Assembly (NCBI GenBank): GCA_965644315.1
Contig: CBFFRQ010000029.1
Coordinates: forward strand, 1 to 64,000
Reading direction: 5' to 3'
Source: Caecitellus pseudoparvulus
Lineage: Eukaryota; Protista; Bigyra: Bicosoecida
Length of the DNA stretch: 64,000 bases
In this document: piece by piece, positions 34,098-64,000 of the stretch
How the letters are laid out: each line of letters begins with the position of its first letter
How positions within the stretch are numbered: position 1 is the first letter of the stretch
Translations under genes and position numbers: made by a program
Notes under the pieces: generated by a model
Databases searched by the model: none
What the model saw: the letters and a program-made list of their open reading frames with translations, nothing else
Told to the model about the DNA's origin: nothing

Positions 34098-34731
34098 GCT
34101 TGAGAGCAACTGCGGGTGGGCAGCGCGTGGGGTGCAGGCAAACTCACCCTCCGTCGAACTGCGGCGCGGCCGCACAGCGACACACAACGCGATCTCTCGC
34201 CGACACGCACCTGCTCCATCTGCACAGTGGCCTGCGAGCGGCGGTTGGCTGCCAGGGTCAAGGCAGCATTGCTGAGGTGCTGGGTGGAAGAAGACCTGCG
34301 CAGTGAGACCGGAGCAACCAGTGAGTCCCCTGTCGGCCAGGGTGGGCGCGAAAACGCCCTGCTTACGTCTCTAGCGTCCGTGCTGCCACCGACTCCACGG
34401 CCCGAGGTCGCCGTGACTGCTGCCTGTGCAGACTTGCTGCCATGATGGCCGGCTCAGGTGCTGGCGCCTGCTGGGCCTGACGGCTTCAGGCTGCGAGGGG
34501 GGTCAGGTGCTGAGCACGGAGCGGACACACAGCCACCAAGCTTGGGCGGTGCCGCACGTGCACGCTGTGGTGGTCCTGCCGAAACAGGGGCGCACGCAGC
34601 ACATGCTGAGTGATGCATGCATGTGGTAGTGACGTGGTTTTGAGTGTGGCGGGGACACGAGTGCTCGCGTCGGGTGCGCTGCTCGCACGGCCCGACATCG
34701 TGTTGCCACTGCACGGGGCGACATGCATTGC

Positions 34732-40100: not shown

Positions 40101-42686
40101 CTCGCATGCGCTGGGCCCGCAGCTGCAGCAGGATGGCCAGCTGCGCGCGGAAGGCGTTCCATGTCTCCCGCAGCAGGGGCTGGGCACTGCCAAAGACGCA
40201 GGCCTCCACAGGCCCAACAGGCCACTCCCGCCCCGACAGGACGCCAGAAGACGCGCCACTCCCATTTCCCGGCGACGTGACGCTGCCCTTGCGTGTCGTG
40301 CCCAGCACTGCCACGACAGAGCGCACTGCCGGGTCGGTGATGCCCGTGCCGACGCGGTGTGTGGCCATCAGCGAGCCAATGTACGTCTGCAGGGCGGCAG
40401 CGACCTGGATGGAGACGTACCCACTCGGCAGTTTGCTGCTGACTGACACGTCCCCCGTCAAGGCGATGACCTCTCCAGGCGACCCGTGGCCCGACGTGAG
40501 CAGGGGGGAGAAGTCAGGGTGGTCCCCATGCAGGCGCACCTTGCTCCCCAGCATGTCTCCGTACGCGGCGACGTAGCCAGCCAGCTCCCCCTCCCCAGCA
40601 GGGCAGGACTGTGCTAAGCCACCTGCCGCCGCGGCAAAGGTCGACGCTGCAGCTGCCCACGTGTTCACGAGCTGCTGCAGGTGACCAGCCACTGCCTGTG
40701 CTGAGGCGAGGGCGTGCGGCGGGCCCTGCTGCCACAGCCGCAGCAGGAGGACACAAGCCTTGATGGCCACGACAGGGTCCGTGCTCAGGGGCAGGCGCCC
40801 GACATTGGTGTAGGTGCCGGTGGCACTGCCACTCTCGTACGCGTCTGTGATGAGGCGGCGGACGTACTTGGCCTTGGGCGGGCCGGGCGTCAGGCCGGAT
40901 GTCGCCTTGATCGCCCACCGTCGCTTCTCCTGGTTCCCCCCAAACAACTGCATCATGCGAGTCTGCATCGTCTCCATGACGCTGGCCGCCGTGCCGCCCC
41001 CTACACTGCCGCGGCGGGTGCCACTGCCGCCTGCACTGCCTCGCTTGCTGCCCCCCGTGGCGCCCTGGGCGGGCTGGGCAGGTGGGGCTTGACCAGACCC
41101 AGCGACAGGCCCTCCACGGGCTTCCCCAGCCCAGAACTCTTCCTCCTCCCCCGCACCCTCACCTGCACCCCAGGGGTCCTGGCCAGGGGAGGCTGCCAGC
41201 GTGCGCTGGAACCCGCCACCACCCTGCCCCAGCAGGCTCGCTGTGCCGCTGGCGCGAGGCGACACACGCTGCGACCCGAGAGGCAGCAAGTCTGTAGGCT
41301 GCAGGCTCCCACGTGACTTTGGAGCCGTGGGTGGCTCGGCGACTTGAGGGGCCGGGGCTGCAGCGAGGCTGGCAGCTGACGCCACAGTGCGCCGGTGCCG
41401 AGCGGGCCACTCCCGACAGGTGCCGCTGCCCTGGACGATGACATCGGCCACACTTGGGCGGTCTGTCGGTTGGTACGTCAAGCATGCACGCATGAGTGCG
41501 ATGGCCTCTGGCGAGTAGCCGTGCCCCGTCGGGACCTTCACGCGCCCCGACAGAATGCCCATGCGCTGCGCGTTCCCCGCCGAGTCCTCAAAGGGAGTGA
41601 CGTGGAACATGAGCTTGTACAGCACGACCCCGAGGGCCCAAACGTCCACGGCCGGCCCCACGCGGAGCCGCGCGTGCAGGTCAGCAAGCTCAGGAGCGCG
41701 ATAGTGTGAGGTTGTCGTGCGGTCCACCACATCCTCCATGCGGGTGATGTCAGCACCCCGGCTCAGGCTGCCTTGCCACGTGGAACACGAGCCGAAGTCA
41801 CACAGCTTGGTGATGCTGTCTGCAGTGTACTTCGTGTCGGTGAGCAGCATGTTTTCCAGCTTGATGTCTCGATGGGCGATGGGCGGGCTCTGGCTGTGCA
41901 AGTACTCCACCGCTGCCGCTGCATCAGCAAAGCGGGCCAGGACCACCGCCTCAGGCAGCTTCGCCCCACTCTCTCCAGCTCTGATGACTTCGTGAATGAC
42001 CGCTCCTCCTGTGGCAGTGGACAGGAGCGACCGGGTTGTGAGCGCAGCCTGCTCTCGCGCACTGAGCGGCTCGCCGTGTACCTGCGCAGTGCTCCAACAC
42101 CATGTCAAACTCTGTGAACCCTTCTGCTGACAACACCTGGTGTTGAAGCAGGCGAACGATGTGAGGGTGTGGCGGCAGTGCCGTCTGTGAGGTGGGGCGC
42201 AGGAGCCAGTGGTGTGGGCTGCAGGCGAAACGCCAGAGAATGGTCCGTCTCCCGCTGAGGTCTGCTGGGCAGGCCTGCACAGAGCGGCGTCGTGTCTCAC
42301 AAGGATCTTAATTTCACTCCTGCACCGGCAGTGGGGGGGGTACTCGTGAGTATTGTGCACGCCGCGCACGCCGTGAGCTTGCTTGTCTGCTCGTCCGCGC
42401 CAGGCTGAAACGCGAGGGTCAGGCCTTACCTTGCCAACGCTAGGTTGATGCTGTTGTCGCTGGCGATCTTCATGCGCTTGATTACGACTGTGGAACCTCT
42501 CCTTTCAGCATCTTCGGCCAAGTAGACGTAGGCGAACCCGCCTGCGTCGGAAAGAAGGTGGTCAGCTTGACTGGGCAGAGCTGGCGTGCTGAGCGCAGGG
42601 TCGGCGCCCGCACCTTCAGCCAGCAGCTCCTTGATGCGCAGACTCCGCCCAGACACACTGACAAGGCGCCCAGACACATTGCCCAT
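37150..42686 (-). CDS. Multidomain dual kinase: NAK-family (AAK1/Ark1-like) kinase + ANTH-like + ArfGAP + C-terminal TKL (Raf-like) kinase; four introns in the 5' region
   Basis: Spliced N-terminus MGN...LAEGGFAYVYLA...VIKRM...SEIKILTALPPHPHIV...LEHCAGG, then PPIAHRDIKLENML, LCDFGS, TTSHYRAPE and DVWALG. ANTH-like KATSGLTPGPPKAKYVRRLI...DPVVAIKACVLLLRLWQQGP. ArfGAP CAEC...WASINLGVLLCLSCSGVHRQLGTHVSKVRSLTLD. TKL IGTGGFAEV, VAVKK, HRDLKSLNLL, VADFGLAR and GTMQWMAPE. Confidence 0.9.
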
Positions 42687-48301: not shown

Positions 48302-51300
48302 TTAGCAAGGAGAGCCCTTGCCGTAGTACTTGGTGAGGCGCTCAGGATAGCCTTGGCCAGGTGGCAAGCGAGGGTCCAGGCGTGCTCCGATGGTGTCACG
48401 GTTGGGGAGGTTGACCGCCTCGTCCACTGGCGTCCAGAACAGGACACACTCACGGATGCGGCGCCGGACCAGGCCACGGGCAATGCACCCTGATGCCTTG
48501 ACAAACAGGTTGAACGTGCCACGGCAGACGTACTTGTAGTTGTCTGAGCGGAAGGGCCACCCAGAGTCAGTCCCAGGCCCGGCGAAGGAGCCCACGTTGA
48601 AGAAGCCCGAGACGAGCGCTGAGAACTGATTGGCGTTCAGAGTGCGTCCACTGAAGAACCGGCGGACAGTCGCTTCGCTCTTATCTTGGACGTGCTTCTT
48701 CAGGTTGGCACGAGCCTCGGCGTCGGTCCAGCAGCACTCGGCGCTGCGGCAGTCGTCTCGGATCCTCCGGGCCTTGGCGACATCGCCCTGGCCCTTGCCA
48801 TGGTAGATGACGTTTCCATAGCCTTGCGTCACGACCCATGGGTGATCCGCCGCGCCGATGAAGGGGCAGTGGTGCTTCACGCCACCGTAGTAGAAGATGC
48901 CAGCTTCCCCCTCCTCTTCCAGAATGAGTTGCAGCCCTGCATCGTTGAGTGAGAAGAGGGACAAGTCTGTGCTGGCACCGCAGCCGCCAGAGTGGCAGTT
49001 GTTGCCTCGGCCTGCGCACAGGTCCCGCACATTCTTCGCATCATCCTCGTTGTACGCCGCCAGACCCTGTGAGGCAGCGCCGCCTTGTGAGCACGTCGCA
49101 CTGCCAGTCGTGGTCGTGCCAGAGTTTGAGCTAGGGTCAGGTGTAGCACTGGGTGAGGGCGTCGTGGACGGCGCCGACGTAGAGCTGGAGGAAGGGGCGG
49201 GTGTTGAGGTTGGTGTGCGGCTGGGAGAGGGCCGCCTCGCGGCAGGCGAAGAGGAGGGCGCGGCGGTGCCATCCACCCCAACGCCAAGGAACGTCCAGGC
49301 AGCCTTGATGCCAGCCTCAATGCCATTCCCTGCTGCTGCATCGTACGCTGGCTGCAAGTCTCGTGCGCGGTTGCGGTGTCCGGGGTGGTACTGCAGGTGC
49401 GGTCCGTCAAAGAAGCTCTTCCAGTCCCCGCCCCATTCAGTGAAGCCATTGGCCTTGCCGACAGCGCCAAGGCGGGCCCACGGGTGACCATTGTCCCAGT
49501 CAGGGCGCCCTGTGGCAGAGTTGTAGAAGATGATGTCACACGCAAGGCCGTAATTGTGCCATGACCCGCCGGCAGTGACCTTGGAGTTGCCTCGTTGGTA
49601 CGCAGCATTCTGGTCGGCATGGCTGCGGTAGCACTCGAACACATACGGTGAGTACCCCTCCGCTTGCAAGTCCAGGACGGTCTCAATGGCCATGCGCCTC
49701 ACATCAGGGTGCACCAACGGGTCGTCCAGCTTGCCACGAGGGTCGAATGCGGGGTGGTTGGTGTTGGCAACTGTCGTGCTGCTGGGCGTCACTGCAGGCG
49801 TGGAAGACGCTGAGGCAGCTGGTGGCGTGGAGGCGCTTGGGGGAGAGCTCGGCGACGTGGTCCCCGAGCCAGACACCCCGATGGACAAGTGAGTCCACAC
49901 GGCCTGCAGCTTGGACAAGATGGAGCCCGTCTGCCCGTTGTACACGGGAATCAGGTCGCGGGACCGCCCAGTGAAGCCAGGGTGGTACTCCAAGTGCGGG
50001 CGGTCCTTGAAGCTGGTCCAGTCTCCGCCCCACACCGTGAAGCCCGCCTGCTTGCCCAGAGCGCCCACCCGATCCCACGGGTGCGACTCCGCCCACGATG
50101 GGTCTCGGCCGTTTGAAGCATAGAAGATGAGGTCGATGGCCAGCCCGTAGTTGTGCCAAGACTGCCCTGCCCTTGCTTGCGTCACGCCACCCTGGTTGTA
50201 CAGCTGATCCTGCCGAGCCCAGCTGCGGTAGGCTTCGAACACATACGGGTCGTAGCCTTCGTTCTGCAGCAGGGTCGCAGTGCGCAGCGCCAGGCGCTTC
50301 ACCTCGGGGTGCACTTCGTCCACAACCAGCACGCCACGTGGGTCATGGTCCTTGACAGGGCGCTGCCTGTTGTTCTGGAAAGGCTCGCAGGCACTGGTAG
50401 GGGACTGGCGGTAGTATCCAGTCACACACTCACAAGTGTCTGTCTGTGGGTCCTTGTACTCGTACTGGCTGGGGCAGCCACCATTGCTGCCGCCACCAGG
50501 CAGGGTCTTGTCTGGCCCGCCTTGGCTACCGCCGCCGGTCGAGCCAGCAGCTGGGCTGCACTGTGGACCGTTGGGCACGTACAGATCATCGCTGGGCGCA
50601 AAGGCGTCATCCTGGAAGAGGGGGTCCCCAAGCGGGTCGTTGGGGTCACTGCCTGTGCCTGTCTGTGCGCAGTTGTTGTTGCCGTTTTGCCCTGCGGCGC
50701 CGCTTTGTGTGGAAGTGTAGGATACGCCCCAGAAGCTGTTGGCAAAGAAACTCCCATCATCGGCGCTGTAGAACGTGCCAAACGCCTGGTCGTAGTCGTA
50801 GAAGCCCCAATCAGCTGTGCCAGAGCCCTCTCGGGACGACTGCGCGGGCGCATCCTGGGCATCGAAGCCGTCAGGCGTGCCGAACAGCCAGCCGCCTCCT
50901 TGAGCGGCGAGCCACTGAGGGGGCTGGTTGGGATCGAAGGGGTAGTGGGCGCCACCAGGCGGACCTGACGCTGCCGCATCGAAGTCGGCGTCGAAAGGCC
51001 CAGGCTGGGCGGCAGAGCCAGTAGATGCTGCGGCATTGGGCTGGTCGCCATTGACTTCATGGGGGTCGGTGGTGAACTCAAATGCAGTTTCTCCAGGTGC
51101 GAACTCATCTTCCTGGGTGTACGAGGGCTGGTTGGCGTCCCCTGGCCCAAGCATCCAGTCAAAGAGGCCAAGGTTGCGAGCATTGTTCCTGACAACCTGG
51201 CGCCGCAGTGCCTCCTCGGCCAAAGCCCGCCTGGAGGGCAGACCCGGCACACCCTCAAAGATGTCGTCATCTTCCAGGAGACCCTCGAATACGTCATCAT

Positions 51301-54300
51301 CTACGGACGGGTTGTTCGTGCTGGGGGTGGACAGCTGGGCATCCTTCCAGCCACTGAATGCGGCATCGGCAACCGAGATGGAGCTGCGCAGATCCTTGGC
51401 CTCCTGCACAGCGTGACGAAGGGACATGTCTTCGAACGCCTCTCCCCACAGACCACGTCCAGCAGCCTCCAATTCGACCTTCCGCGCCTGTGTGGGGCTG
51501 TTCGGCTCGTTGCTCTCGCTGAAGTCATCTGCTGAAGCCTCCAGCATGGCGTCCGACTGGTCACTCGCTGCGGTGAAGCCGTCTCGACTGGCGGCTCCGC
51601 TGAGTTCACTGAAGCGCTCAGGGGCCTCAGACCCTGCGCCAGAAAACATCTTACACTTGGAAGCCCACCTTGCATAGGCCCCGCACAAGCTGGGGGACTG
51701 CACCTGCCAGTGGGCCGCGCCGTGCTTGTCCACGGGGTACGCAGCGCGTGGCTTCTCCACAAGGCATGCCTTGCCCGCAGCCGCGTCAGCTACGCGCACC
51801 GCTCCCACCAATTCTACGCTAGTCGGGCAGCCGCAAGCACCGTCGCGAGGCAAGCCTTCACGTGGAACGAGTTCCAGCGCAGAGAACACGCCAGGGGACG
51901 GGTTCGCGTCTTCCACCAGGCGGCGGCGGCCCAGGGTCAAGAGCGGGTTCACGGTGCCGAGCAGTTGCTCCACGTTGTGGTTCCATCGCAGCTGGAAACC
52001 CAGGATCGATGCGCCGTACACGTCACTGAGGGCGACTTTTGGAGAGAAGGCGTACTGTACGAGCCCATGAGCAAAGGCTTGCTGCGCCGGCGTGCCGGCC
52101 GCGAAGGAGCTCGCGGTGCTGGTGCTCTTCTCCACAATCACGTGGGTGCGCGCCCAGCCATGTGCAGTGAGGGCTGCATGAGCCCCAGGCGCAACAGTGT
52201 CTTCGTGCGCCAGGAACGCTATGCCCTGGGACAAGTAGCCCTTGCCGAAGGCGTCCACAGGTTCGGGGTCTTTCGGGCGGACGCGGCTGTCATCGCGCAG
52301 GCCACACAGTCCATTCATGGCCAGAGACGCATGCTCCGCAAATGGCCGGAACAGTGTCGTCACGCTCATGTCGGGCGGAGTCCAAGCTGCCGCAGCAGCC
52401 TCTGCAGCCACCTCTGCGGCGCGCTTGTCCGCGATGGGCCATGCTGGGAGCAGTGCCGAAATGCCTGATGGGTCTGGCCCCCGAACGGACAGAGTGTTTG
52501 TGGTGCCCGCGGCATTTCCCGCGGACAGGGGCAGGGGAGGCAGGTCATCGATCGTCTGGTTGCCCTCGACGAATGCTGACGCGGGCAGTGAATCTAGCCA
52601 CGCCTGATGGGCCGTCTCCATGTGGGATTTGAACAATGCGGCACGCTCTGTGGCGATCCAGCTCCCCATGGCAGAGCTCAGAGCCTTCCACGCAGCAGTT
52701 TGCAGCAGAGGCAGGTCTGCAGCACGCTCAGAGAGGGCTATGCCAGGCACGGCAGAGACACTGCTGAGGGCTTCAGGCAGCAAGCACTTAACATCATCTG
52801 CAAGCTGATGCACGACGCGGTTCAGGGAGGGCAGGTGGCACACTGCGGCGGGCTCTGCGACTGCAACGTCCTGCACCGACCCAGTCTGCTGGCCAGATGT
52901 GCGGGCCTTGTCGAAGTGAGAGCCATGCATGACGTGGCCAACACGCACGGCGTTGGTCAGCGGCATGCTGGGCAGCTTCACCGAGCGGGAGGGTGCCTTC
53001 ATCAGGCGATCCGCAATGCCAGGGCGCATGGGCACAGCAAGAGCACCGGAAGCGTCTGGGCTGGCGCCAGCTTCACCCTTCAAACAGAAGCCAAGCACTG
53101 CGCCCGAGCCAGAGGCTGTGGAACACGCCTCAATTTCTGTCCGCACCTCCATGCCATAGCCACTGACTCCATGGTTGAAGATCGCCTGCAGCCCACGGCC
53201 GTGGGTGCGCAGTGTGGCACCTGGGCCGTACAGCTCCTCCACACTGAATGCCGGGTGGGGAGTGGCCTTCCGCCGCAAGCCACGCTGGCCTGCCCGCGCA
53301 ATCGCAGCGCTGGAGCCAGCATCAGCAACCCCACCCCAGAACGTTCGGGACGTGTCAAGGAATGGGTTGAATGCGTCGTCAGATGCGCTGGCATCCTCCC
53401 ACGGCCACGCTTGGTCCAGGTCGCCGCCACGCACGCGCACGTTGCCTGCAGGTGCGGGCTGACCCACGTTGGGGTCCGACGTGCTGGCGCCGTTAGCGGT
53501 GGCGTCGTCTGCGACCCACCATTGGTCATCCCCGGCCCCAGACCCAGAGGACGCACCCGAGTCGTCATCGATGAGGTCAAACTTAGCAGTCCCATCGTCG
53601 TCACCAAACTGGAACGTGTCGTCAGACCCATCGGTTGCCCAGACGCCCCAGTCGTCGTCAGTCCACGTGTGCGAGGGGTCATCGCCAAACAGACTCGTGC
53701 TTGCGTCGTCATCGTCAAAGCCCTGCTGCCCGAAGTCGTCGCTGGACCACTTAAAGTCATCTGAGCTGTACGCAGACGTCGCATCCTTGGTGTTCCACCA
53801 GTCATCATCCACTTGATCGTCAGGAATCGTGCTGGTCCCGATGCCTTCGTACGAGCTGCCGCTGCCGAACAGGCCCGTGAACGGACTGCCGTCGTCAGTG
53901 GTCAGCCCGAACGCATCGTCATTGGGTTCGACACACATGTTACCATCCTGGACGTAAGGTGCCTTGCACACGCACCGGCCCTGGTCATGGTCAAACTCTG
54001 CGTTCTCAGGGCATGCACCAAGCTCGTCCGTCCCCAGGGTGCTGTTGGAGCCATCAGGGACGGCGCCCGTTGCGTCAAGGTTGTAGGGGTTGCGCATGCA
54101 CAGGCCCTCGACTGGAATGTCGCCAGGCTCAGGGCAGTCGCAGCTGCCAAGCTGAGCATCGTAAGTTCTTCCATGAATGCAGTTTGTGGCGGCAGCCTTG
54201 TCCTCTTCGCAGCTGCTGGAGATGGTGACGGTGCCGGAGAAACTCGTCGAGTTTCGCGTGATGAGGATGTGGCCCGCGTGGCACACACACGAAGCAGACT

Positions 54301-57300
54301 TCTCATCAAAGTACGAATCGTCTGGGCACTCGTACGACGGGTACAGGGATGCCAGCAGGCTCTGCGCTTGGGGCACTGTCGATGCCGGCGCGCACTCGAA
54401 GTCGTGCATCTTGAAGCCAGTCGCACAGACGCAGCTCCCAGCCCTGGGGTCCCAGTACGCGTTCACAGGGCACTGCACGATCTCACGCGACGGTCTGCGC
54501 TCCTTCACGCAGCTGCCGTGGGCCAACACAAAGCCAGGCAGGCAGCCACACTCGCCATCAACAGAGCGCCGCCCAGGTGGGCACGCCTCGCACGGCCAGC
54601 CAGCAGCTCCGTCGTACTTGTACCCCAGGTTGCACTCACACCGGCCTCCCACCACGCTGCCATGCTGAGCTTGCGTACAGTCCTTGCAGGTGCCGCCGTG
54701 GGCAGCCTGGGAGCTGGATGAACATGCGCACTGTCCACTGGTCGTGTCCAGGGACATGCCGCTGCCACACATGGAGGACGTGTCTGGCAGGGAGTCCAGC
54801 GGAGCGCAGCCGGCATCAGTCATTTCGTACCCAGTTGAGCACACACACACGCCGTCTTCCTCCCGAGAGTTGGGTGGGCACTGGATGCACTGCGCGTCCC
54901 GGTCCCGAATGAAGCCGTTGTTGCACACGCACACCCCTCCGTCCTTGTGGGAGTTGTCAGGGCAGGGCAGGCACTGGCCACCAAAGTTGGCGTACGGGCC
55001 AGTGCAAGTGCACATGCCAATACCAGCTTGGTATTCGGAGTTGGGTGGACACACGACCGTCACATTCGTGGATGGGGTGTTGGGGTTGGCCTGCAGACTC
55101 ACACACTGTGCGTTGATCATGGTGTACCCATCCACGCAGACACAGTTGCCGCCCTTGACCACTTGGTGCTGTCCACAAGCGACACACAACCCAGACACCG
55201 GAGACTTCACAAACCCAGGTTCGCACACGCACGTTCCGCGCACCTCAGTGCTGTGTGCAGGGCACAGGTTGCACACGCCGCCGGACATGTAGTAGCCATC
55301 GTCACAGAAACAGCTCTGGGCCGCGGGCGAGTACGAGGAAAAGTCGGGGCAGTGTGTCTCATTGGCAGGGGCCCACGGCTCCCAGAACACACTGCCCTCT
55401 GGAGGAGGCATGCACATACCCCCTCGCATGTGGGGTCCCACGAATGCATCTGGGTTGCCGTAGTAACCACGGCACTCGCAGACGCGATCACTGTCCCACC
55501 TGGCGTACTCCGGGCAGCGTGCACACTGACCTACAGCTGTGGGCTGGAAGTTCTCGTCACACAGGCAGTGACCGTCCACCGCCGTGGACCCGGGCGGGCA
55601 AGGGGCACACACGCCATCCACCCGACTGTACCCATCCCGACACTTGCACACCCCGCCAACTTCGCGGGAGTTGCTTGGACAGGGCAAGCACATGTCACCC
55701 TGCATGACCAGGCCTTCCACACAAACACACGTCCCAGCCATGCCGTCTTCTGAGAACAGAGCGTACGCGTTGGCAGGGCAGGCGAGGCCGCCAGAGTTCG
55801 CGGCGCCCTGCACGGCCACACACTCCCCATCCTCAGCGCGGGCGAAGCCGCCAATGCACTGACACTGGCCTGCTGCACCATCATAGTAAGCGTACGCACC
55901 ACAGTCGTGCTTTGTGGTACCCTCGCCTTGCCCACCGCCAGCGGCTGCGTTGGCGCACTGGCCGTCTGTCAGCTTGATATAGCCGTCGATGCAAGTGCAC
56001 TTGGCGTTGATGGGGGACCAGAAAGCATAAGGGACGCACCTTGGATCAACTGCAGAGACACACTGCCGCTCAGGGGTCATGATGAAGCCAGCGTTGCACT
56101 TGCAGCGGCGGATGGCGGCGTCGAATGCCGAGTTGTCAGGGCATGCCGAAGGGTCAGTTTGAATGGGGGTTGGTGTGATGGACGGAGCTGGTCGATCCGA
56201 CACCACCGGCGACGCAGAGGCAGAGGCAGCAGGACCACCGTTGCAGGTGTTGAGCACTCGGCGCAAGTTGACTGGGCCAGATGGAGGGGGGAGAGCAGCT
56301 GGGGCAGGGGCAGCAGCGGGCGCAGGGCCCCCGAGCTCACGGCGACGGCTGCCTCCATCAAAGCGAGCCTCAATAAGCGCCCAAGCAGCCTGCAGGCCGC
56401 TCAAGCTGTCGTCCAGGATGAGGTTCTTCCACTCACGAGGACTGCCGTCGATGTTGGGGTGGAACTCGACGTGAGGCCTGTCCTTGAAACTGCCCCTGAA
56501 GTCCAGCCCAGCGAGGGTGAAGCCGTACTCGTAAGACAAGTCAGCGTAGCGGCGCCACCAAGCCTCGGGAACAGTGCTGGGGTCCCAGCTGCTATCACGC
56601 ATGTACACGTCGATGGCAAGCCCGTACTGGTGCCACGAGGAGCCGCACCGTGCCTTAGAAGCCCCTGATCGGTACGCGGCTTCCTGGTCTGCACACCCTC
56701 GCCAGCAGTCCACAACCATGGACCTCATGCCTTCCTCCTGCAGGCGATTGAGGAGGAGCGTTGCACGTTTCACCACCTCGGGGTGGCACTTGGGGTTGTC
56801 CAGGGGCTTGCGGCTTGATTGGATGGCACCTGAACCGGTGTACGTGCCAAGTTGCGGGTTGGGCTTCGCTGCTGCTGATGGGGACGCGGCTGTGTTCATG
56901 CGCCAGGAGAGGGCAGCAGGGCTAGGCGTGGGCGACGGCGCACAGTTGGAGGGTGAGCTGCAGCCGTCTGAGGGGGTAAATGGGAACCACCCAGGCTGTG
57001 GGCAGAAGATGGAGTTGCCTTCGCCGTCGTCGGTGTTGCAAGACCAGGGGAAGGACCAGGTGTAGCCGCCATCGTCGGTCTGGAGGACTCCCGTGGAAGT
57101 TGGCGTGTCATCTTCACAGTCATCTTCACACTCGCCGGCAGCAGGTTGCGTCATGGGAGGACCTGCCCACGGTGTCTCTGGCTCGTTAGGGTCCCATTTC
57201 ATGTAGTTACAGTTCCCGGGCCGCTGGTACCGGCAGAAGATGTTGCGCATGTTGGCCTGAGCTCGAGACGCCAAGAAGGACACCAGGGCACTCTTGTAAA

Positions 57301-60300
57301 AAGCGTAGTACTCCTGGCGGGCGCCTCGGTCGCAGTTGACACAGGCTTCTTGGACACTTCTGATCGCCTGCAGGTCGCAGTCGGCTGGCGCGCCTTTGGG
57401 GAAGCCATCGGCAGGCGACGCCATGAGCGCCATTTCGGTCATCTGGCCGTAGGCGCTGTCCACTTCCAGGCGCAGCATGCTGGCGTTCACGTTGTAGTTC
57501 CACAGAAGCTGGAAGGCCTCTAGGGTCTTGCTCTGCACGTTCTTGATACCCGGGAAATTGGTTGGCACGTTGAAGTGCCCAGGATCATACGCAACTTCCA
57601 CCCAGCGACCCCCTTGCGCAGCCGTTGTTCTCTCCAAGAAGTATGGCTTCCAGCCAGTCCAACTGGCGTGGTCCATGTCCAGGGCACGCCCCGATTGGTG
57701 AGCAGATCGGCCTGGCGATCCCACGGGCGTGTTGGGCCGAATGCCGCAACCTGAGTGTTGATTGCCTGGGTGGCCCGGGGTGTTGCCTAGGAACTTCCAC
57801 CTCCGGAGGACCTGTTGCTGTGCTGCCGAGCGCAGGGCCGAGTTCACCTGGATCACGATGTTGCGGTTGGAGGCATCCACACTTCGCCGATACTCGATCT
57901 TCTTCTTCAACGCATCTGCCGTGGCCTTTTGCAGGTACGGGTTTTCCTTGGCAGAAGGCTCCAGCGACAGCATGTTTGCAACAGGGTGGTGGTTTGTGGC
58001 ATCCTTGTCGATGTTGGAGAAGATGTTGCCGCTAACGCATACCAGCATGCCAATAAGCTGCTGCGTCAAGCCTTTCACGATGACGCCAGAGCCACACTTC
58101 TCGTCCTCGCCAGGGCACCTGTAGCACTCATCCGTCGCCTCTTGCAACGTCTTGCCCCAGCGCAGGTCGTTGCTGTGTCGCCACACCATCTCCGCCCGTC
58201 GGCCATGTACGGCCCTCATGATGCGACGAGCGCCGGTGTCTTCCAAAGCCTCCACTTCCGCGTCTGACAGCTTATGCTCTACCAGGCGCACGCTGCCGTC
58301 GGGCTGGGTAACTGAGCGAAGCTCACGCCGGGTGCGCTTCTTCGCCTCCACAGCAGCCATGTGAGCGAGAGTTTTAGCCGAGTCGCCTGCACGGGAGAGG
58401 ATTTCCATGTTCTCTGCATCCAACTTGCGGCGGGGGTCAATCTGTGTCTCGCGGAAGCGCTTGCGGTAGGATGCTGCCTGGTCCATGGCATCAAAGTCCA
58501 CCATAAGTTGCGCTGTCTCCCTCTCAAGCACGTACTGCTCCACCGTCATCCCATCAGGCACGAGCACAACTTGCCCCAAGGCGGGGGACGAGATGCCTGA
58601 CGTGAGCAGGGAGCCAGGCACTTGCACCGTGACCGTCGTCGTGTTCAGGGGCTCAAAGTCAGGGATGGAAGGGAGCGTGATTGACAGGCGATTGGGGGAG
58701 TGGCGCCTGAAAACAGCAGCACCAGGCACTTCTGCATCTGGGCTGATCACGTCCGATGGCCCCCGGGCAGCTGTCAGCTGCTCGGACTGGGAGTCAAGGC
58801 CTGACGCCAGGACGGGGGGGAACACCCGAGACACTCGAGGGGCCCCCAGGATTGCCCCGTACATGCGAGTCAAGTCTGCACTGGCCATGTGGTTGAGAGC
58901 TGCAGAGGCGTTGTGCGCAAGGACGTACGCCCTGCTGGACTCGAGGAGTGCGCCACCAGACGCAGCGCCGGAGAGGGACGCATCCACGGTCAAGTTGAAG
59001 GCTGGGAAGGCATCACCTGGCTTGAAGCCAGCTGGCAGCAGTGGTTGGATGCTGAAGAGAACAGGCATGCGGTGCAGGGGTTGCGTGGCAGCAGGGTCTT
59101 CGCCGAGCGGGGTCCAGAACAGGATGCACTCGGCGTGGCGCCGCTTCACCATGCCGCCGGCAATCGTGCTGCCCGATCGCGACAGGGTCCACTTGCGGAA
59201 TTCACTGCAGACCCGATCGTAGTGCCCTGCTCGAAGTGCCCGCTGAAGGGACGAAGTTGCAGGGTTGGAAAACCGGTGGCAGCCGAGAGAGAAGACGAAC
59301 GAGACCAAGGCTGAGAACTGGTTGGCGTTCAGCGGCACATCCCCAGCATATCGCCGCACACACGCCTCTGCTTGGCCAATGTCGTCTACGAGCCACGCAT
59401 CCATCTGGGGTTCCTTCGTGAAGTCGTAGCCATCGTAGTGCGCGTCCCGGGCAGTCTTGTGCTCGGCAATGACGTGGCCATACCCGATGCTGACCATGCC
59501 GGGGGGGTCGTATGCCCCAAAGAAAGCGTACGGGGTCCAGCCCTCAAAGTGCCGGATGAGCTCCACGCCTCGTGGCGTCGTCCAGAGCCTATCATAGTCC
59601 GTGGTGGACCCACTGCCTCCAGCACCGCACGCCTCCCCACGTCCACCACACGAATCAGTGTACGCTGTGGCATTGTCAAAGGGCAGTGTGCCATTGACAC
59701 CGTGCACAACTCCAGCAGCAGGTGCCGCGTACGACACAGCGCCAACGACAGGCGGCACCCCGCTGCGGAGGCCTGTGGGGGCAGAGCTCACCGAGGGGTC
59801 GGCAGGCGGCGCTTCCAGCTGCCAGAATGGCACGATGATGGTTGGGTCTGGAGCGGCAGCAGCCTGCAGTGCGCGTGGGGCCTGGCGGGAGCTCGACAGT
59901 GCCTGCGCCCGCTCAAGGTTGTGCTGCGCGTATCCCGGGGAGACCAGCAGAGCACGGCGTGAGCGGCTGGAGGTGCAGCGTGGCGTGGACAGAGACGCAG
60001 GTGCAGTCGTGTTGGCCAAGATGTGTGCCACGACGAAGGTGTCTCGCCCGACTGGGTTGCGCGGGACGGACTCCCGCCAAGACGCGTCCGTGTCTCGGAT
60101 GAAGCGGAGGGTGGGCGCGTCTCTGTCAGGTGTCGCGACAGGGGTCCAGAACAGGATGCACTCCAAGTGGCGCTGCAAGACGAGGTCATCGTCAAAGCAA
60201 GAAGCCTCGGTGTTGATGTACGTCATCATGCGCGCACACACGTTGCTCCAATCGCCAGTTGCCATGGTCTCCTGCAGGTGGGCGTCAGGCCACACGCTGC

Positions 60301-63300
60301 CGCCAGATGTGGCGAACTGCACAACCAGCGCCGAGAACTGGTTTGTGTTGAGGGCTTTGCCCGCAAACCGCTCCCGCACAGCTTGCTCTGCCAAGAGAAT
60401 CGCACCCTCAGCCTGTACCAGCGCACGGTCCCTGTCCCAGAAACACACGGAGTCAACTGCAGCGACACAGTCGCTGACGTACTGCTGCGCCTCAGCAGGC
60501 GTGCTCGCAACGAGGACAACAGTTTCAAACCCTTGCGTGACTACCGTTGGCGCGTTCACTGGGTCGGGGATGTGAGGCCGAGCGGTGAAGTGTGCGACGT
60601 ACTTGAACAGCAGGCGCGCCACAGGGTTCAGGACAAAGGCGTCCAGATTCAAGCTGGAGCCAGGGCCACCTTCGTAACACTCGCCCCCTCGTCCACCACA
60701 CCCGTCGTCAAAAGCACTGTTGCCGTTGAAGCGCTTGACGTACCCGGCTGAACCATCCGGGTCGTACAGCAGCGACCTTCCAATGGCGATTGCAGTGGAC
60801 CGGCCGAAGAAGCCGGCAGCTTGCTTGGCAGCCAGGCGGTACCCCAGAGCAGCGGAGCGGTACAGGGCAGGGATGACAGTGGCATCCCACGACCCGGGCT
60901 GGGTCATAGCCGTGGGGTTGGCCGGGACATCGGCGCCACCGCTGGGGTGCTCGAACAGCGTGCCAAGGTTTTGCAGGTTTAGATGCGGTGCGAGGGACTT
61001 GTCCTGCAGCATGCCAGCCACCAGGGCGGTGCGCAGCTCAGGCATGTCAACGGCGTCACGCACGAAGGTGTCGCAGGAAAGCTCCAGCACGAGGCGTGTT
61101 CCGCCGAACTCCACCGCGGCAGGCGAGGTGGTCTCATCCGGGTCTGATGCCAAGGGGACCAAGTCCCCAGAGAGCTTGACTGGCCACTCGTTCAGCGGTG
61201 TCGCGCTGATTGCGTGCATGCCTCCGGCACTCTCCCGCACGGTCAAGTGCCACGGTGCGGCTGCGGACATGTCCACACCGACCAGGTGGTTGGCACCTGA
61301 CGCAACCTGGTATGACTGTCCAGGTGCCCAGGTGTCTTGGATGTCACCAGATTCAACAGCGTTGCCACTGCTGCCATGCGGAACACCGCCCCAGCCAACG
61401 ACAATGTCGGAGCCAAACTCGCCCCGGAACCATTGGCTGGACACTGAAGGGTCCGCTGCTGCCCATGTCCCATTGGCAAGCTGCACTTGTGCACCAGCGC
61501 CAGCGGCATCGATGGCATCGTACCACTGCAGGGCCGCGTCGATGGCTGCTCCTGGTTCCAGCACAGAGCCCGAGCTGCTGGAGCCTGGTGCGGATGGCGT
61601 GCCGCCTGTGCTGAAGGCGCCAGGAAGGTTGACGGAGACGAAATGCGAGGAGGAATCCAACAACTCATCCAGCAAGTTCACGGAGCGGGCAAGGGTGTAG
61701 GGGGGAAGGGCAACGCCACGCGGGCGAGTTGACTCGGTGATAACCAAGTCTGGGTTGGCCGGCCGCCCGTGCGAGAGGGGGACGACTCGCAAGCACACCC
61801 CAGCAGTGCCAGGGGCGTTCTTGAGAGTGTAAGCAGCGTAACCACCTCGGGGCAGGCGGGCGCTGGTGACAGCTCCCGACGCCAAGTCAACTGTGGAGAG
61901 GGCCTGGAAAGACACAGTGGCCACCGAAAAGTCCAAGAACGCCCAGTCTTGGCTGAAGTCGGCAGCGTGCGCTGGAGAACGGGGCACGTCGACACTGGCA
62001 CGCAAGGCAAAGACGAGGCTCGTGGCATGCGTGCCGTTGAGCAGACCACCCGAGCCAAGGCTGGCCCCATCTATGTTCATGGAGCTTCTGACAAACGACA
62101 TGGGGCTGCCCAGGGCTGCCCCCAGGGCATCGTGGAACTGCACTTGCTTCACCTGGATGTCGTCACTGGAGAACGCCGCGGCGCCGGGAGAGGGGTACCT
62201 GCCAGGCAGGAACTTGGGCCGCCCAGAGAGGAAGGGGTCGTTCTCCACTGCGGGACTCTCGTGCAAGGGCAGGAAGGACGGGTTGGCAAATACCTCAGGC
62301 ACGACAGCCACAGCCACTGCCGGGTCCACCAGCTCCTCACCAGTGCTGTTGAAACGCAGCTGCGTCTGGATGGCAGCCTGCACAGGCACTGGGAGCGTAG
62401 CTGCTGCGCTGTGGGCATCCACAGCTGCGACAGAAGGATTCAGCGGCATCTCGAAATGCAGCCAAGAGTGAAGTGGCATGTGTACATGCTGCACAGCTCC
62501 AGGCACGAACGGGGCGATGGCACGGGCGGTGATGTCGAACGATGCGGCCCAATGCGACCTCGCGGACACGACGAGCAGCACGGTGTTAGCGGCTTCCATG
62601 CCGTGCCTGAACCAGGTGCGTGCGAGCTGCCCAGCAGCAGCTGCAGTGCTTCCCCCCGCAGGGCGGATGAAATCCAGCTTGTTGTGGGAGGGGAAGCCTT
62701 CCGCATGCACTGCGTCTTGCCCCACCCCCTCCGGGCCAGGGGGGCGCAGCTGCACGTCCAGCACCTCGGCATCCGACGTGCCCACGCCAAGCACCTCCAG
62801 AGACACAGCGTCGAGAACAGTGACCTCCACAACTGCCCCTGCAGGGTTGTCAGCCTTGCGCCGTCCACCAAGCACGGACTGTGGGAGGTTCTTGCCCAGC
62901 TGGCCGGCCACGGGCTGGCTGGACGCTGTGTCTGCCAAGCCCTTTGCCGCAGGCAGGGCACACAGCGTGCGCCACACAGCTTCATCGACTGTGCTGCTGG
63001 AGTGGTTGGCTGACTGTGGAACGTCGAAAGCCGAACGGAATGTTCGCACGAGGTCAGCCATAGCAGGGCTCCAATCTCCGGTCGCATGCACGCGGGCGTC
63101 GCCACCCAGGTACCCGCCCATGGCCGCTTGAAGCATGAGCTGCGCAAGGCGCAGGTCGTCATCGCTCGTAGAATGAGACGCAATGACTGGCCGCCGAGCG
63201 CACACGTCGGGAGTCCGCTGCACAGAGACAGAGAGGCGTCCAGTGCCCGAGGGCAGTCGCACCGCATACACTCTGTGATCGCCCGCGGCAACCGAGCCGC

Positions 63301-64000
63301 GTAGTGCCGAGCCAGTCACGGCATAGAGTACTTCTGAACTTGCCACGCGAGCATGGTACGGTCCAGCTGTGGCAGTGCCTGCGCCCCGTCGGGGCTTCAC
63401 ACTGGCTCGGGTGACGGCTGTACGAGAGGCTTCCCCGCAGATGCCGAAGCTGCCAATGTTGGTGGCACCAGGGGGAGCTGCCGCCGCCAACGCAGCTGAA
63501 GCTGCGCAGGGCATGAAGAGGCGCTCCTCCCCCGCTGGCATGTCCATGCTCGCAACGCGCGAGATGCCTGACGAGTCGGTGAAGGAGTACGCCGCCCCTG
63601 CAGGGGTTCTCCAGCGGGCACTTGACACGGCGCCGCTGCTCGCAGGGTGCTGAGTGTCTTGTGATGCCGCAGCAAGGGTGAGGCCAGCGTCAGTCATGGC
63701 CCACGCAAGGTCCACGTCCGCTGCGGCAACGCCAGGCAGGTCGTCAGCAGGCAGGGAAGCAGCGAAATAGCCCACAGCCCGGGAGCCAGCCAGGGACAGG
63801 AGAGCAGCACGCTGTGGCACGTCCCCGCTTGCGGGAGTGAAGGTACCTTCCACCTCTGCCGCGCTGCCCAGGGCAGGAAGCACTGCGACTCCACCCCGGA
63901 CGACGAACTGGCACAGGCTGGTGCCCGACGCTGCCACATTGCTTGCCACGAGGCCAGCAGCGGCAGCCGCGCCTGCTGCACACCTGACAGTAACGAACAT
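48302..64000 (-). CDS. Giant multidomain peptidoglycan hydrolase (PG-binding domain, 3x GH24 lysozyme, 4 intact + 1 degenerate M15 peptidase, 21 EGF-like repeats); probably 5'-partial
   Basis: 5,232 open codons reaching the window edge. GH24 motifs HFEG...SIGYGH...LNANQFSALVSF...RRHAE. M15 motifs SWH[NQ]YGLA[IC]D + DxxH (three times) and SAHQSGRALD + DPGH. Confidence 0.9.
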   Translation of the reverse strand: MFVTVRCAAGAAAAAGLVASNVAASGTSLCQFVVRGGVAVLPALGSAAEVEGTFTPASGDVPQRAALLSLAGSRAVGYFAASLPADDLPGVAAADVDLAWAMTDAGLTLAAASQDTQHPASSGAVSSARWRTPAGAAYSFTDSSGISRVASMDMPAGEERLFMPCAASAALAAAAPPGATNIGSFGICGEASRTAVTRASVKPRRGAGTATAGPYHARVASSEVLYAVTGSALRGSVAAGDHRVYAVRLPSGTGRLSVSVQRTPDVCARRPVIASHSTSDDDLRLAQLMLQAAMGGYLGGDARVHATGDWSPAMADLVRTFRSAFDVPQSANHSSSTVDEAVWRTLCALPAAKGLADTASSQPVAGQLGKNLPQSVLGGRRKADNPAGAVVEVTVLDAVSLEVLGVGTSDAEVLDVQLRPPGPEGVGQDAVHAEGFPSHNKLDFIRPAGGSTAAAAGQLARTWFRHGMEAANTVLLVVSARSHWAASFDITARAIAPFVPGAVQHVHMPLHSWLHFEMPLNPSVAAVDAHSAAATLPVPVQAAIQTQLRFNSTGEELVDPAVAVAVVPEVFANPSFLPLHESPAVENDPFLSGRPKFLPGRYPSPGAAAFSSDDIQVKQVQFHDALGAALGSPMSFVRSSMNIDGASLGSGGLLNGTHATSLVFALRASVDVPRSPAHAADFSQDWAFLDFSVATVSFQALSTVDLASGAVTSARLPRGGYAAYTLKNAPGTAGVCLRVVPLSHGRPANPDLVITESTRPRGVALPPYTLARSVNLLDELLDSSSHFVSVNLPGAFSTGGTPSAPGSSSSGSVLEPGAAIDAALQWYDAIDAAGAGAQVQLANGTWAAADPSVSSQWFRGEFGSDIVVGWGGVPHGSSGNAVESGDIQDTWAPGQSYQVASGANHLVGVDMSAAAPWHLTVRESAGGMHAISATPLNEWPVKLSGDLVPLASDPDETTSPAAVEFGGTRLVLELSCDTFVRDAVDMPELRTALVAGMLQDKSLAPHLNLQNLGTLFEHPSGGADVPANPTAMTQPGSWDATVIPALYRSAALGYRLAAKQAAGFFGRSTAIAIGRSLLYDPDGSAGYVKRFNGNSAFDDGCGGRGGECYEGGPGSSLNLDAFVLNPVARLLFKYVAHFTARPHIPDPVNAPTVVTQGFETVVLVASTPAEAQQYVSDCVAAVDSVCFWDRDRALVQAEGAILLAEQAVRERFAGKALNTNQFSALVVQFATSGGSVWPDAHLQETMATGDWSNVCARMMTYINTEASCFDDDLVLQRHLECILFWTPVATPDRDAPTLRFIRDTDASWRESVPRNPVGRDTFVVAHILANTTAPASLSTPRCTSSRSRRALLVSPGYAQHNLERAQALSSSRQAPRALQAAAAPDPTIIVPFWQLEAPPADPSVSSAPTGLRSGVPPVVGAVSYAAPAAGVVHGVNGTLPFDNATAYTDSCGGRGEACGAGGSGSTTDYDRLWTTPRGVELIRHFEGWTPYAFFGAYDPPGMVSIGYGHVIAEHKTARDAHYDGYDFTKEPQMDAWLVDDIGQAEACVRRYAGDVPLNANQFSALVSFVFSLGCHRFSNPATSSLQRALRAGHYDRVCSEFRKWTLSRSGSTIAGGMVKRRHAECILFWTPLGEDPAATQPLHRMPVLFSIQPLLPAGFKPGDAFPAFNLTVDASLSGAASGGALLESSRAYVLAHNASAALNHMASADLTRMYGAILGAPRVSRVFPPVLASGLDSQSEQLTAARGPSDVISPDAEVPGAAVFRRHSPNRLSITLPSIPDFEPLNTTTVTVQVPGSLLTSGISSPALGQVVLVPDGMTVEQYVLERETAQLMVDFDAMDQAASYRKRFRETQIDPRRKLDAENMEILSRAGDSAKTLAHMAAVEAKKRTRRELRSVTQPDGSVRLVEHKLSDAEVEALEDTGARRIMRAVHGRRAEMVWRHSNDLRWGKTLQEATDECYRCPGEDEKCGSGVIVKGLTQQLIGMLVCVSGNIFSNIDKDATNHHPVANMLSLEPSAKENPYLQKATADALKKKIEYRRSVDASNRNIVIQVNSALRSAAQQQVLRRWKFLGNTPGHPGNQHSGCGIRPNTPVGSPGRSAHQSGRALDMDHASWTGWKPYFLERTTAAQGGRWVEVAYDPGHFNVPTNFPGIKNVQSKTLEAFQLLWNYNVNASMLRLEVDSAYGQMTEMALMASPADGFPKGAPADCDLQAIRSVQEACVNCDRGARQEYYAFYKSALVSFLASRAQANMRNIFCRYQRPGNCNYMKWDPNEPETPWAGPPMTQPAAGECEDDCEDDTPTSTGVLQTDDGGYTWSFPWSCNTDDGEGNSIFCPQPGWFPFTPSDGCSSPSNCAPSPTPSPAALSWRMNTAASPSAAAKPNPQLGTYTGSGAIQSSRKPLDNPKCHPEVVKRATLLLNRLQEEGMRSMVVDCWRGCADQEAAYRSGASKARCGSSWHQYGLAIDVYMRDSSWDPSTVPEAWWRRYADLSYEYGFTLAGLDFRGSFKDRPHVEFHPNIDGSPREWKNLILDDSLSGLQAAWALIEARFDGGSRRRELGGPAPAAAPAPAALPPPSGPVNLRRVLNTCNGGPAASASASPVVSDRPAPSITPTPIQTDPSACPDNSAFDAAIRRCKCNAGFIMTPERQCVSAVDPRCVPYAFWSPINAKCTCIDGYIKLTDGQCANAAAGGGQGEGTTKHDCGAYAYYDGAAGQCQCIGGFARAEDGECVAVQGAANSGGLACPANAYALFSEDGMAGTCVCVEGLVMQGDMCLPCPSNSREVGGVCKCRDGYSRVDGVCAPCPPGSTAVDGHCLCDENFQPTAVGQCARCPEYARWDSDRVCECRGYYGNPDAFVGPHMRGGMCMPPPEGSVFWEPWAPANETHCPDFSSYSPAAQSCFCDDGYYMSGGVCNLCPAHSTEVRGTCVCEPGFVKSPVSGLCVACGQHQVVKGGNCVCVDGYTMINAQCVSLQANPNTPSTNVTVVCPPNSEYQAGIGMCTCTGPYANFGGQCLPCPDNSHKDGGVCVCNNGFIRDRDAQCIQCPPNSREEDGVCVCSTGYEMTDAGCAPLDSLPDTSSMCGSGMSLDTTSGQCACSSSSQAAHGGTCKDCTQAQHGSVVGGRCECNLGYKYDGAAGWPCEACPPGRRSVDGECGCLPGFVLAHGSCVKERRPSREIVQCPVNAYWDPRAGSCVCATGFKMHDFECAPASTVPQAQSLLASLYPSYECPDDSYFDEKSASCVCHAGHILITRNSTSFSGTVTISSSCEEDKAAATNCIHGRTYDAQLGSCDCPEPGDIPVEGLCMRNPYNLDATGAVPDGSNSTLGTDELGACPENAEFDHDQGRCVCKAPYVQDGNMCVEPNDDAFGLTTDDGSPFTGLFGSGSSYEGIGTSTIPDDQVDDDWWNTKDATSAYSSDDFKWSSDDFGQQGFDDDDASTSLFGDDPSHTWTDDDWGVWATDGSDDTFQFGDDDGTAKFDLIDDDSGASSGSGAGDDQWWVADDATANGASTSDPNVGQPAPAGNVRVRGGDLDQAWPWEDASASDDAFNPFLDTSRTFWGGVADAGSSAAIARAGQRGLRRKATPHPAFSVEELYGPGATLRTHGRGLQAIFNHGVSGYGMEVRTEIEACSTASGSGAVLGFCLKGEAGASPDASGALAVPMRPGIADRLMKAPSRSVKLPSMPLTNAVRVGHVMHGSHFDKARTSGQQTGSVQDVAVAEPAAVCHLPSLNRVVHQLADDVKCLLPEALSSVSAVPGIALSERAADLPLLQTAAWKALSSAMGSWIATERAALFKSHMETAHQAWLDSLPASAFVEGNQTIDDLPPLPLSAGNAAGTTNTLSVRGPDPSGISALLPAWPIADKRAAEVAAEAAAAAWTPPDMSVTTLFRPFAEHASLAMNGLCGLRDDSRVRPKDPEPVDAFGKGYLSQGIAFLAHEDTVAPGAHAALTAHGWARTHVIVEKSTSTASSFAAGTPAQQAFAHGLVQYAFSPKVALSDVYGASILGFQLRWNHNVEQLLGTVNPLLTLGRRRLVEDANPSPGVFSALELVPREGLPRDGACGCPTSVELVGAVRVADAAAGKACLVEKPRAAYPVDKHGAAHWQVQSPSLCGAYARWASKCKMFSGAGSEAPERFSELSGAASRDGFTAASDQSDAMLEASADDFSESNEPNSPTQARKVELEAAGRGLWGEAFEDMSLRHAVQEAKDLRSSISVADAAFSGWKDAQLSTPSTNNPSVDDDVFEGLLEDDDIFEGVPGLPSRRALAEEALRRQVVRNNARNLGLFDWMLGPGDANQPSYTQEDEFAPGETAFEFTTDPHEVNGDQPNAAASTGSAAQPGPFDADFDAAASGPPGGAHYPFDPNQPPQWLAAQGGGWLFGTPDGFDAQDAPAQSSREGSGTADWGFYDYDQAFGTFYSADDGSFFANSFWGVSYTSTQSGAAGQNGNNNCAQTGTGSDPNDPLGDPLFQDDAFAPSDDLYVPNGPQCSPAAGSTGGGSQGGPDKTLPGGGSNGGCPSQYEYKDPQTDTCECVTGYYRQSPTSACEPFQNNRQRPVKDHDPRGVLVVDEVHPEVKRLALRTATLLQNEGYDPYVFEAYRSWARQDQLYNQGGVTQARAGQSWHNYGLAIDLIFYASNGRDPSWAESHPWDRVGALGKQAGFTVWGGDWTSFKDRPHLEYHPGFTGRSRDLIPVYNGQTGSILSKLQAVWTHLSIGVSGSGTTSPSSPPSASTPPAASASSTPAVTPSSTTVANTNHPAFDPRGKLDDPLVHPDVRRMAIETVLDLQAEGYSPYVFECYRSHADQNAAYQRGNSKVTAGGSWHNYGLACDIIFYNSATGRPDWDNGHPWARLGAVGKANGFTEWGGDWKSFFDGPHLQYHPGHRNRARDLQPAYDAAAGNGIEAGIKAAWTFLGVGVDGTAAPSSSPAARRPSPSRTPTSTPAPSSSSTSAPSTTPSPSATPDPSSNSGTTTTGSATCSQGGAASQGLAAYNEDDAKNVRDLCAGRGNNCHSGGCGASTDLSLFSLNDAGLQLILEEEGEAGIFYYGGVKHHCPFIGAADHPWVVTQGYGNVIYHGKGQGDVAKARRIRDDCRSAECCWTDAEARANLKKHVQDKSEATVRRFFSGRTLNANQFSALVSGFFNVGSFAGPGTDSGWPFRSDNYKYVCRGTFNLFVKASGCIARGLVRRRIRECVLFWTPVDEAVNLPNRDTIGARLDPRLPPGQGYPERLTKYYGKGSPC
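48428..49025 (-). other. GH24 lysozyme domain 3 (C-terminal)
   Basis: LNDAGLQLILEEEG...VVTQGYGN...LNANQFSALVSGFFNVG...GLVRRRIRECVLFWTP. Confidence 0.85.
49280..50348 (-). other. M15C-like L-Ala-D-Glu endopeptidase domains 2 (about 50348-49880) and 3 (about 49747-49280)
   Basis: EAYRSWARQDQLY...ARAGQSWHNYGLAIDL...WGGDWTSFKDRPHLE and ECYRSHADQNAAY...GGSWHNYGLACDI...WGGDWKSFFDGPHLQ. Confidence 0.9.
53930..56150 (-). repeat. Array of 20 four-cysteine EGF-like protein repeats (C...CxC...C) inside the giant ORF
   Basis: Units such as CPSNSREVGGVCKCRDGYSRVDGVC and CPDNSHKDGGVCVCNNGFIRDRDAQC, counted by eye. A 21st unit lies at about 50480-50380. Confidence 0.85.
56370..56815 (-). other. M15C-like L-Ala-D-Glu endopeptidase domain 1
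   Basis: HPEV...DCWRGCADQEAAY...ARCGSSWHQYGLAIDV...FKDRPHVEF. Confidence 0.85.
57390..58125 (-). other. M15 (VanY/D,D-peptidase-fold) zinc peptidase with C-terminal PG-binding-like tail
   Basis: VNSALRSAAQQ, PGRSAHQSGRALD and YDPGHF, followed by AFQLLWN...VDSAYGQMTEMALMASPADGF. Confidence 0.8.
59108..60710 (-). other. GH24 lysozyme domains 1 (about 60710-60140, degenerate) and 2 (about 59660-59108, intact)
   Basis: Copy 2: GVELIRHFEGWTPYAFFGAYDPPGMVSIGYGH...LNANQFSALVSFVFSLG...FRKW...GMVKRRHAECILFW. Copy 1 keeps LNTNQFSALV and ECILFWTP but lacks the FEG Glu. Confidence 0.85.
62960..63165 (-). other. Peptidoglycan-binding-like (PG_binding_1-type) domain within the giant ORF
   Basis: DDDLRLAQLMLQAA...ATGDWSPAMADLVRTFRSAFDV...STVDEAVWRTL resembles the consensus 'dV..lQ..L....dG.fg..T..AV..FQ....dG.vg..Tw..L'. 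Confidence 0.65.

Follow-up and report, generated by a model that had tools for sequence, protein, structure and literature searches.

A single gene in the window analysed here, which spans the initial 64 kb of contig C29 (314,547 nt) in a eukaryotic assembly of 30.6 Mb and 215 contigs, encodes eight GH24- or M15-type modules in one predicted secreted chain. These comprise three GH24 modules (two with catalytic triads), four motif-intact M15 modules (three of them Ply500-type M15C) and one degenerate M15, combined with 20+1 EGF-like units (Table 1). It is a real, conserved eukaryotic nuclear gene and not an artefact, given that a colinear ortholog on an independent contig shares its intron position. 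Our best explanation, in which we have about even confidence, is that the product would be a polyprotein, secreted or phagosomal, from which wall-lytic pieces are cut, and would not act as one intact machine. More tentatively, it may belong to a class of giant eukaryotic polyproteins not described before, which would be divided in the secretory pathway into a coordinated set of glycan- and peptide-cleaving wall hydrolases and parts for binding or scaffolding, and would serve this flagellate lineage as a dedicated apparatus for digesting bacteria.

Gene structure, host and relatives

The stop-free frame described by the sequence-only reading is present at 48305-64000(-), with its stop codon at 48302-48304. 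Beyond the window, the frame stays open up to C29:66226, giving a stop-free stretch of 5,974 aa, so the ATG at 64000 was rejected as start codon and reflects a window-edge coincidence. Extension along the contig revealed an upstream exon with a signal-peptide-like N-terminus, and exons 1 and 2 join in frame to a predicted model of ~6,113 aa; the join was frame-checked, and the homology searches used the exons separately. The signal-peptide-like exon is kept in the ortholog and no transmembrane segment stands out in the giant protein, consistent with the earlier proposal of a eukaryotic gene whose product enters the secretory pathway. Membrane anchoring was rejected given the lack of a transmembrane segment.

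Table 1. Features of the giant gene and its predicted product, in contig C29 coordinates and in the order of the product; amino-acid (aa) numbers are counted from position 64000.
Feature	Position	Strand	Remarks
Exon 1	66376-66841 (466 nt)	-	ATG at 66841; hydrophobic signal-peptide-like N-terminus, then RKL
Intron, phase 1	66178-66375 (198 nt)	-	GTGAGT..CGCAG; donor 66375, acceptor 66178
Exon 2	begins 66177; window part 48302..64000	-	giant gene
PG-binding-like candidate (weak)	63011..63163	-	70% identical in ortholog
Beta-rich region, possibly PPC-like sandwiches (lead)	60719..62920	-	ESM Atlas feature matches
GH24-1 pseudo-lysozyme	60116..60718	-	catalytic Glu replaced; Cys/Gly N-cap
RRAL	59948..59959	-	aa 1348; RAL also at aa 1376; between GH24-1 and GH24-2
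GH24-2 lysozyme	59081..59668	-	triad E1486, D1498, S1504 (Ser for Thr)
RREL	58319..58330	-	aa 1891; kept in ortholog
M15a Zn-peptidase	57386..58138	-	distinct family; R2057, H2101, D2108, D2139, H2142; helical tail
M15C-1	56366..56818	-	R2434, H2457, D2464, D2507, H2510
RREL + RRVL	56252..56344	-	aa 2553 and 2580; before EGF array
20 EGF-like CxC units	53906..56158	-	repeat pattern
First acidic linker	53201..53893	-	then RGLQ motif at aa 3602
Degenerate M15	51971..52858	-	aa 3715-4010; lacks the Zn ligands and carries a large insertion; conserved in the ortholog and paralogs
RRRL, RRAL and RNL, with second acidic linker	50501..51928	-	RRRL, RRAL and RNL motifs at aa 4025, 4257 and 4275
Single EGF-like unit	50381..50476	-	CxC pattern
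M15C-2	49871..50353	-	R4592, H4616, D4623, D4666, H4669
M15C-3	49271..49753	-	R4792, H4815, D4822, D4865, H4868; Ser/Thr/Pro linkers either side
GH24-3 lysozyme	48305..49048	-	triad E5030, D5052, T5058; E-D insertion; conserved C-terminal tail

The surrounding genes are eukaryotic and include WW/IQ, kinase-ANTH-ArfGAP, ARMC5-like, WD40 and a cadherin/TIG giant. The intron-containing neighbour reported ~160 nt away proved to be the WW/IQ gene, which has GT-AG introns and ends at 48141, tail to tail with the giant gene. The GC3 of the giant gene is 0.71 (neighbours, 0.66-0.86). A bacterial contaminant was rejected in view of GT-AG introns, eukaryotic neighbours and GC3. Within the window, 37150-42369 (-) encodes a protein that combines ANTH and ArfGAP with two kinase domains, and 23223-34187 (-) is a 3,654-aa ORF with a weak ARMC5-type armadillo match. 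Nine kb from the giant gene, a 4,679-aa ORF (C29:75729-89765 (+); L003/L004) combines SIBA-type integrin-beta-like N-terminal domains, cadherin and TIG repeats and a WW domain, and is a candidate adhesion or phagocytosis receptor.

The BiP encoded in this genome shares 83% identity with Bicosoecida ms1, 82% with Cafeteria roenbergensis and 90% with sequences of a sister group, and the BiP tree resolved placement down to that sister group. This makes a bicosoecid-like stramenopile the probable host, from which we infer bacterivory. SSU rRNA matches at C91:18239-19866 and C213:27842-29337 scored differently from the main C81 array, and may be degenerate copies or stem from an organelle or another organism.

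The GH24-2 region matched a single protein among those of similar length: P0001, of 5,941 aa, colinear throughout and 56% identical. It is encoded on JGI contig Ga0307982_1000180 (L035) from an independent metagenome that also holds a BiP from the sister group, has a different upstream neighbour, and has its own signal-peptide-like exon, after which a GT-AG intron of 149 nt interrupts the same codon in the same phase. Across 5,536 codons, dN was 0.42 and dS 1.65 (dN/dS about 0.25); given that dS is near saturation, the inequality dN<dS alone counts. The lowest dN was that of GH24-2, and the catalytic motifs of GH24-2, GH24-3, M15a, M15C-2 and M15C-3 are present in both species. The metagenome scan used P0001-specific patterns and is not a measure of distribution. 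A third species is represented by a 1.1-kb ENA contig covering the last linker, GH24-3 and the tail with 62-63% identity, and no Cafeteria ortholog appeared in protein searches, one of which also missed P0001.

The same genome holds two paralogs, at C57:310229-324628 (4,800 aa) and C31:412901-427000 (4,700 aa), which share 83% mutual identity. They share with the giant its N-terminal region as well as two GH24 and two M15-like modules; the EGF array, the M15C modules and GH24-3 are missing from both. A near-identical (91%) gene for a giant single-pass membrane protein precedes each (C57:324799-334998 and C31:427544-434998 (-)), indicating that the two loci arose by segmental duplication. In addition, the Symbiodinium sp. 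KB8 assembly contains a 2.3-kb contig (P0002) that matches 58859-61241 with 99.6% identity and is probably a co-cultured contaminant of that assembly, as judged from BiP and small GT-AG introns; GCA_905221625.1 (L026) thus appears to hold DNA of this protist annotated as dinoflagellate. A chimeric join, on which the sequence-only reading would have foundered, was rejected in view of the ortholog contig, the intron, the KB8 contig and the paralogs.

Hydrolase, repeat and N-terminal modules

Two lysozyme modules proposed earlier were recovered by Phage_lysozyme (PF00959), with E values of 5e-24 for GH24-2 and 2e-11 for GH24-3 (89.3 and 48.5 bits, respectively, cut-off 22.3), and the best PDB matches of the GH24 module were GH24 muramidases (E 2e-18). 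The catalytic Glu, Asp/Cys and Thr positions and the C-terminal RR..E are found in GH24-2 (as E-D-S) and GH24-3 (E-D-T), Ser in place of Thr being seen in 4 of 145 GH24 homologs. Given this replacement in GH24-2 and the long E-D insertion in GH24-3, activity is not guaranteed. GH24-1, already described as degenerate, was weak alone (Pfam E 0.03; PHROG E 5e-4) and clear against the other copies (E 1e-16). Its catalytic Glu position, occupied by Glu in 143 of 145 homologs, holds Ala here and in the ortholog and Trp in both paralogs, and between the orthologs it has a dN of 0.30 against a dS of 1.3. All ten GH24 copies from the giants group together in a single clade (FastTree support 0.96) that further includes P0027 and two C40 genes on long branches, and this clustering suggests that the three copies are internal duplications of a single acquisition. 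At C40:330156-331778 (+) (L025), two tandem small GH24 genes have an intact E-D-T and are divergent from the copies of the giant.

The three M15C modules matched Peptidase_M15_4 (PF13539) with 54.1, 48.5 and 26.1 bits (cut-off 25), as anticipated, and their best PDB matches were Ply500/LysB4 (E 5e-21). Aligned to 2VO9, all three have the Arg, the H-x6-D Zn ligands and the D-x-x-H. The nearest M15C relative found was a bacterial-looking PG-binding-M15C gene (L045; 58% identity).

The VanY-like M15 (M15a, aa 1955-2205) was likewise upheld, both by its fold and by an HMM built on non-self homologs (E 3e-39). The predicted model (pLDDT 84.7) had leading matches of VanX/VanY/LdcB/Ply500/Hedgehog type, each modest but consistent, and its R, H, D, D and H are invariant across 12 sequences. 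It is not VanY/M15B proper, with 20.8 bits for PF02557 (cut-off 25) and D-x-x-H instead of E-x-x-H; its relatives occur in Polyangiaceae and in the amoeba Clydonella. Our own PG-binding HMM gave no match in its tail, for which a PG-binding-like domain had been suggested. The degenerate M15 was recognizable from its N-terminal portion, with E 2e-7 where the reversed control gave no match (hhalign 88%).

The EGF-like CxC units were confirmed as exactly 20 at aa 2633-3343, plus one at aa 4523. A PG-binding-like domain had also been proposed for the N-terminus, for which PG_binding_1 gave E 0.15 and 12.7 bits against a cut-off of 23 and our own HMM nothing, so that this domain is a weak candidate. 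No Pfam or Atlas match was obtained for the N-terminal 500 aa, whose AlphaFold model had a pLDDT of 27.6, and no family was assigned to the first ~1,000 aa. The beta-rich region had no Pfam match, and its ESM Atlas feature matches (0.91-0.94) included PF04151 clusters at low recognition. Elsewhere in the genome, two separate genes have clear PG_binding_1 domains (C32:627064-627234 and C24:56924-57085), suggesting a broader set of wall-directed proteins in this organism.

GH24 enzymes hydrolyse the MurNAc-GlcNAc backbone and M15C enzymes cleave the L-Ala-D-Glu stem bond. Based on this family knowledge and the intact motifs, both activities are expected, and it is highly probable that some module hydrolyses peptidoglycan. 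The earlier claim of combined attack on glycan and peptide is supported, as a prediction, for the motif-intact GH24 and M15C modules, whereas PG binding by the N-terminal domain is not. The modules had also been ascribed to phage and bacteria; the closest relatives found are bacterial and from other protists, and are not specifically phage.

Proposed processing of the precursor and alternative readings

RRxL occurs seven times in the giant protein where 1.3 are expected (~5-fold) and six times in the ortholog where 1.1 are expected, and four long ORFs nearby show no such enrichment. None of the seven falls within the enzyme or EGF modules, which together make up 41% of the length, and RRxL ranked 5th of 8,000 comparable patterns, those ahead of it being mostly due to domain repeats or to the acidic linkers. 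The ortholog does not count as an independent sample, and given that the motif was chosen post hoc, after sequence inspection, and that plain RxL shows no enrichment (28 observed, 22.8 expected), the argument is of moderate weight. Moreover, only four of eight RxL in low-identity flanks are kept in the ortholog. RxL follows the signal peptide in both species. The genome encodes a homolog of MBTPS1 (site-1 protease); S1P cleaves at RRxL in plants (RALF23; PMC13082318), and diatom precursors are processed at RXL (PMC4557024). The sequence features by which we would recognize an S1P/RXL polyprotein, namely linker RRxL (the post hoc choice), a signal peptide and a protease in the genome, were found. 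The intact machine of the sequence-only reading was not established, the linker motifs instead pointing to a cleaved polyprotein, and we consider cleavage at RRxL somewhat probable.

According to this polyprotein reading, a nuclear gene of a probably bacterivorous flagellate would deliver a soluble ~6,100-aa precursor into the secretory pathway, as the signal-peptide-like exon and the absence of a membrane anchor suggest, where a site-1-type protease could cut it at linker RRxL/RxL. The pieces released would include GH24-2 with a following domain, M15a with M15C-1, the EGF array, and a C-terminal M15C-M15C-GH24 unit carrying both activities. Acting inside food vacuoles or on the cell surface, the GH24 modules would hydrolyse the glycan backbone of prey peptidoglycan and the M15C modules would cut its stem bond; the dead copies would probably bind the wall or scaffold the remaining parts, and a single gene would ensure co-delivery of glycan- and peptide-cutting activities at a fixed ratio. 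Limiting this explanation, M15C-1 is dead in the ortholog, where two Zn ligands are lost, and the paralogs keep one intact-looking enzyme.

Alternatively, the chain could stay whole, or its pieces assembled, as a tethered multi-enzyme acting on prey walls in a cellulosome-like manner. The conservation of order and length across ~5,900 aa is consistent with such a tether, as are the Ser/Thr/Pro linkers without RRxL that join M15C-2, M15C-3 and GH24-3, and the EGF array could be a spacer. However, the linker RRxL enrichment, the missing anchor and the differing module sets of the paralogs make it rather unlikely. Purifying selection on the dead GH24-1 and the dead M15, the mostly disabled paralogs, the EGF-like repeats and an M15a fold that resembles the Hedgehog N-domain no less than it does peptidases (Z 8.2 vs 7.8) would suit a protein mainly for prey capture, adhesion or wall sensing, in which enzyme folds mostly bind peptidoglycan and hydrolysis is secondary; five catalytic constellations kept between species at saturated dS, and again the lack of a membrane anchor, render this reading unlikely. 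We regard as improbable that the lytic enzymes are released outside the cell for antibacterial defence or biofilm loosening, not vacuolar digestion: the signal peptide, disulfide-rich modules and absent anchor agree with it, and either cleavage state fits, but soluble lysosomal hydrolases carry signal peptides as well. Trichomonas provides a precedent in its favour, turning acquired PG hydrolases on neighbouring bacteria (PMC12612818). Finally, an assembly chimera, a bacterial or phage contaminant or untranscribed inserted DNA is largely refuted, and most improbable, given the conserved GT-AG intron on an independent contig, the 99.6%-identical contig in another assembly, the two paralogs, a GC3 inside the range of the neighbours and the eukaryotic genes alongside.

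Significance and comparison with known systems

Heterotrophic flagellates are major consumers of aquatic bacteria, and few of the wall-digesting proteins they use have been defined. The giant gene is a testable handle on how grazers digest bacterial prey, offering named, expressible modules with clear predictions on the bond cut, the cleavage sites and induction by prey. Active-site gain and loss between species and paralogs provides a natural experiment in the conversion of enzymes to binding modules. If the polyprotein reading is true, a eukaryote packs several bacterial-type lytic enzymes in one precursor for delivery at a fixed ratio.

The sequence-only reading knew of no described protein with this architecture, and our incomplete literature search found no published description either: the papers covered contained neither the size, nor the combination of eight hydrolase-type modules and an EGF array in a single secreted chain, nor the candidate processing sites. 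The parts and the M15a-GH24 pairing are already known. Small M15+GH24 fusions (P0004 and P0152/P0005, the latter on a bacterial contig) and the Clydonella PG-binding-M15 protein P0068 join the same M15a family to GH24 or PG-binding domains, indicating that the pairing predates the giant gene. In contrast to the giant, these unannotated database proteins have 370-800 aa (500-800 aa for the M15a+GH24 fusions), one copy of each module and a different order. P0004 (L047), on a 2.4-kb contig with 37% GC, has 803 aa with a signal peptide, M15a, GH24, Cys-rich repeats and a hydrophobic C-terminal tail, and represents a small eukaryotic-looking analogue that would be easier to express.

Known GH24 muramidases (PF00959; PDB 8B2S; phage P22/P21; MAST-4) share the fold family, the E-D-T/S triad and RR..E with GH24-2 and GH24-3, whereas here three copies, one without Glu, have a private Cys/Gly N-cap and lie in one 6,100-aa chain. 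The GH24 genes of the bacterivorous stramenopile grazers MAST-4 are short (0.6-1.5 kb) and highly expressed (PMC8237690), and GH24 and M15C transcripts were listed for a rumen ciliate (PMC6925433). The M15C L-Ala-D-Glu peptidases (Ply500, 2VO9; LysB4, 6AKV; CwlK) have R, H-x6-D and D-x-x-H in common with our three modules, which differ in being eukaryotic, predicted to be secreted, triplicated and fused to lysozymes and EGF repeats. In diatom silaffin, silacidin and frustulin and in plant RALF23, the processing motif follows the signal peptide and lies between units, as it does here; those precursors release peptides or structural repeats, whereas the giant, with its predicted cleavage, would release several different enzymes. 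The Trichomonas toolkit (NlpC/P60, GH19, GH25 and GH3; PMC12612818) likewise gives a protist both glycan- and peptide-cutting hydrolases of bacterial origin, but as separate small genes and from other enzyme families than those joined in the single chain described here.
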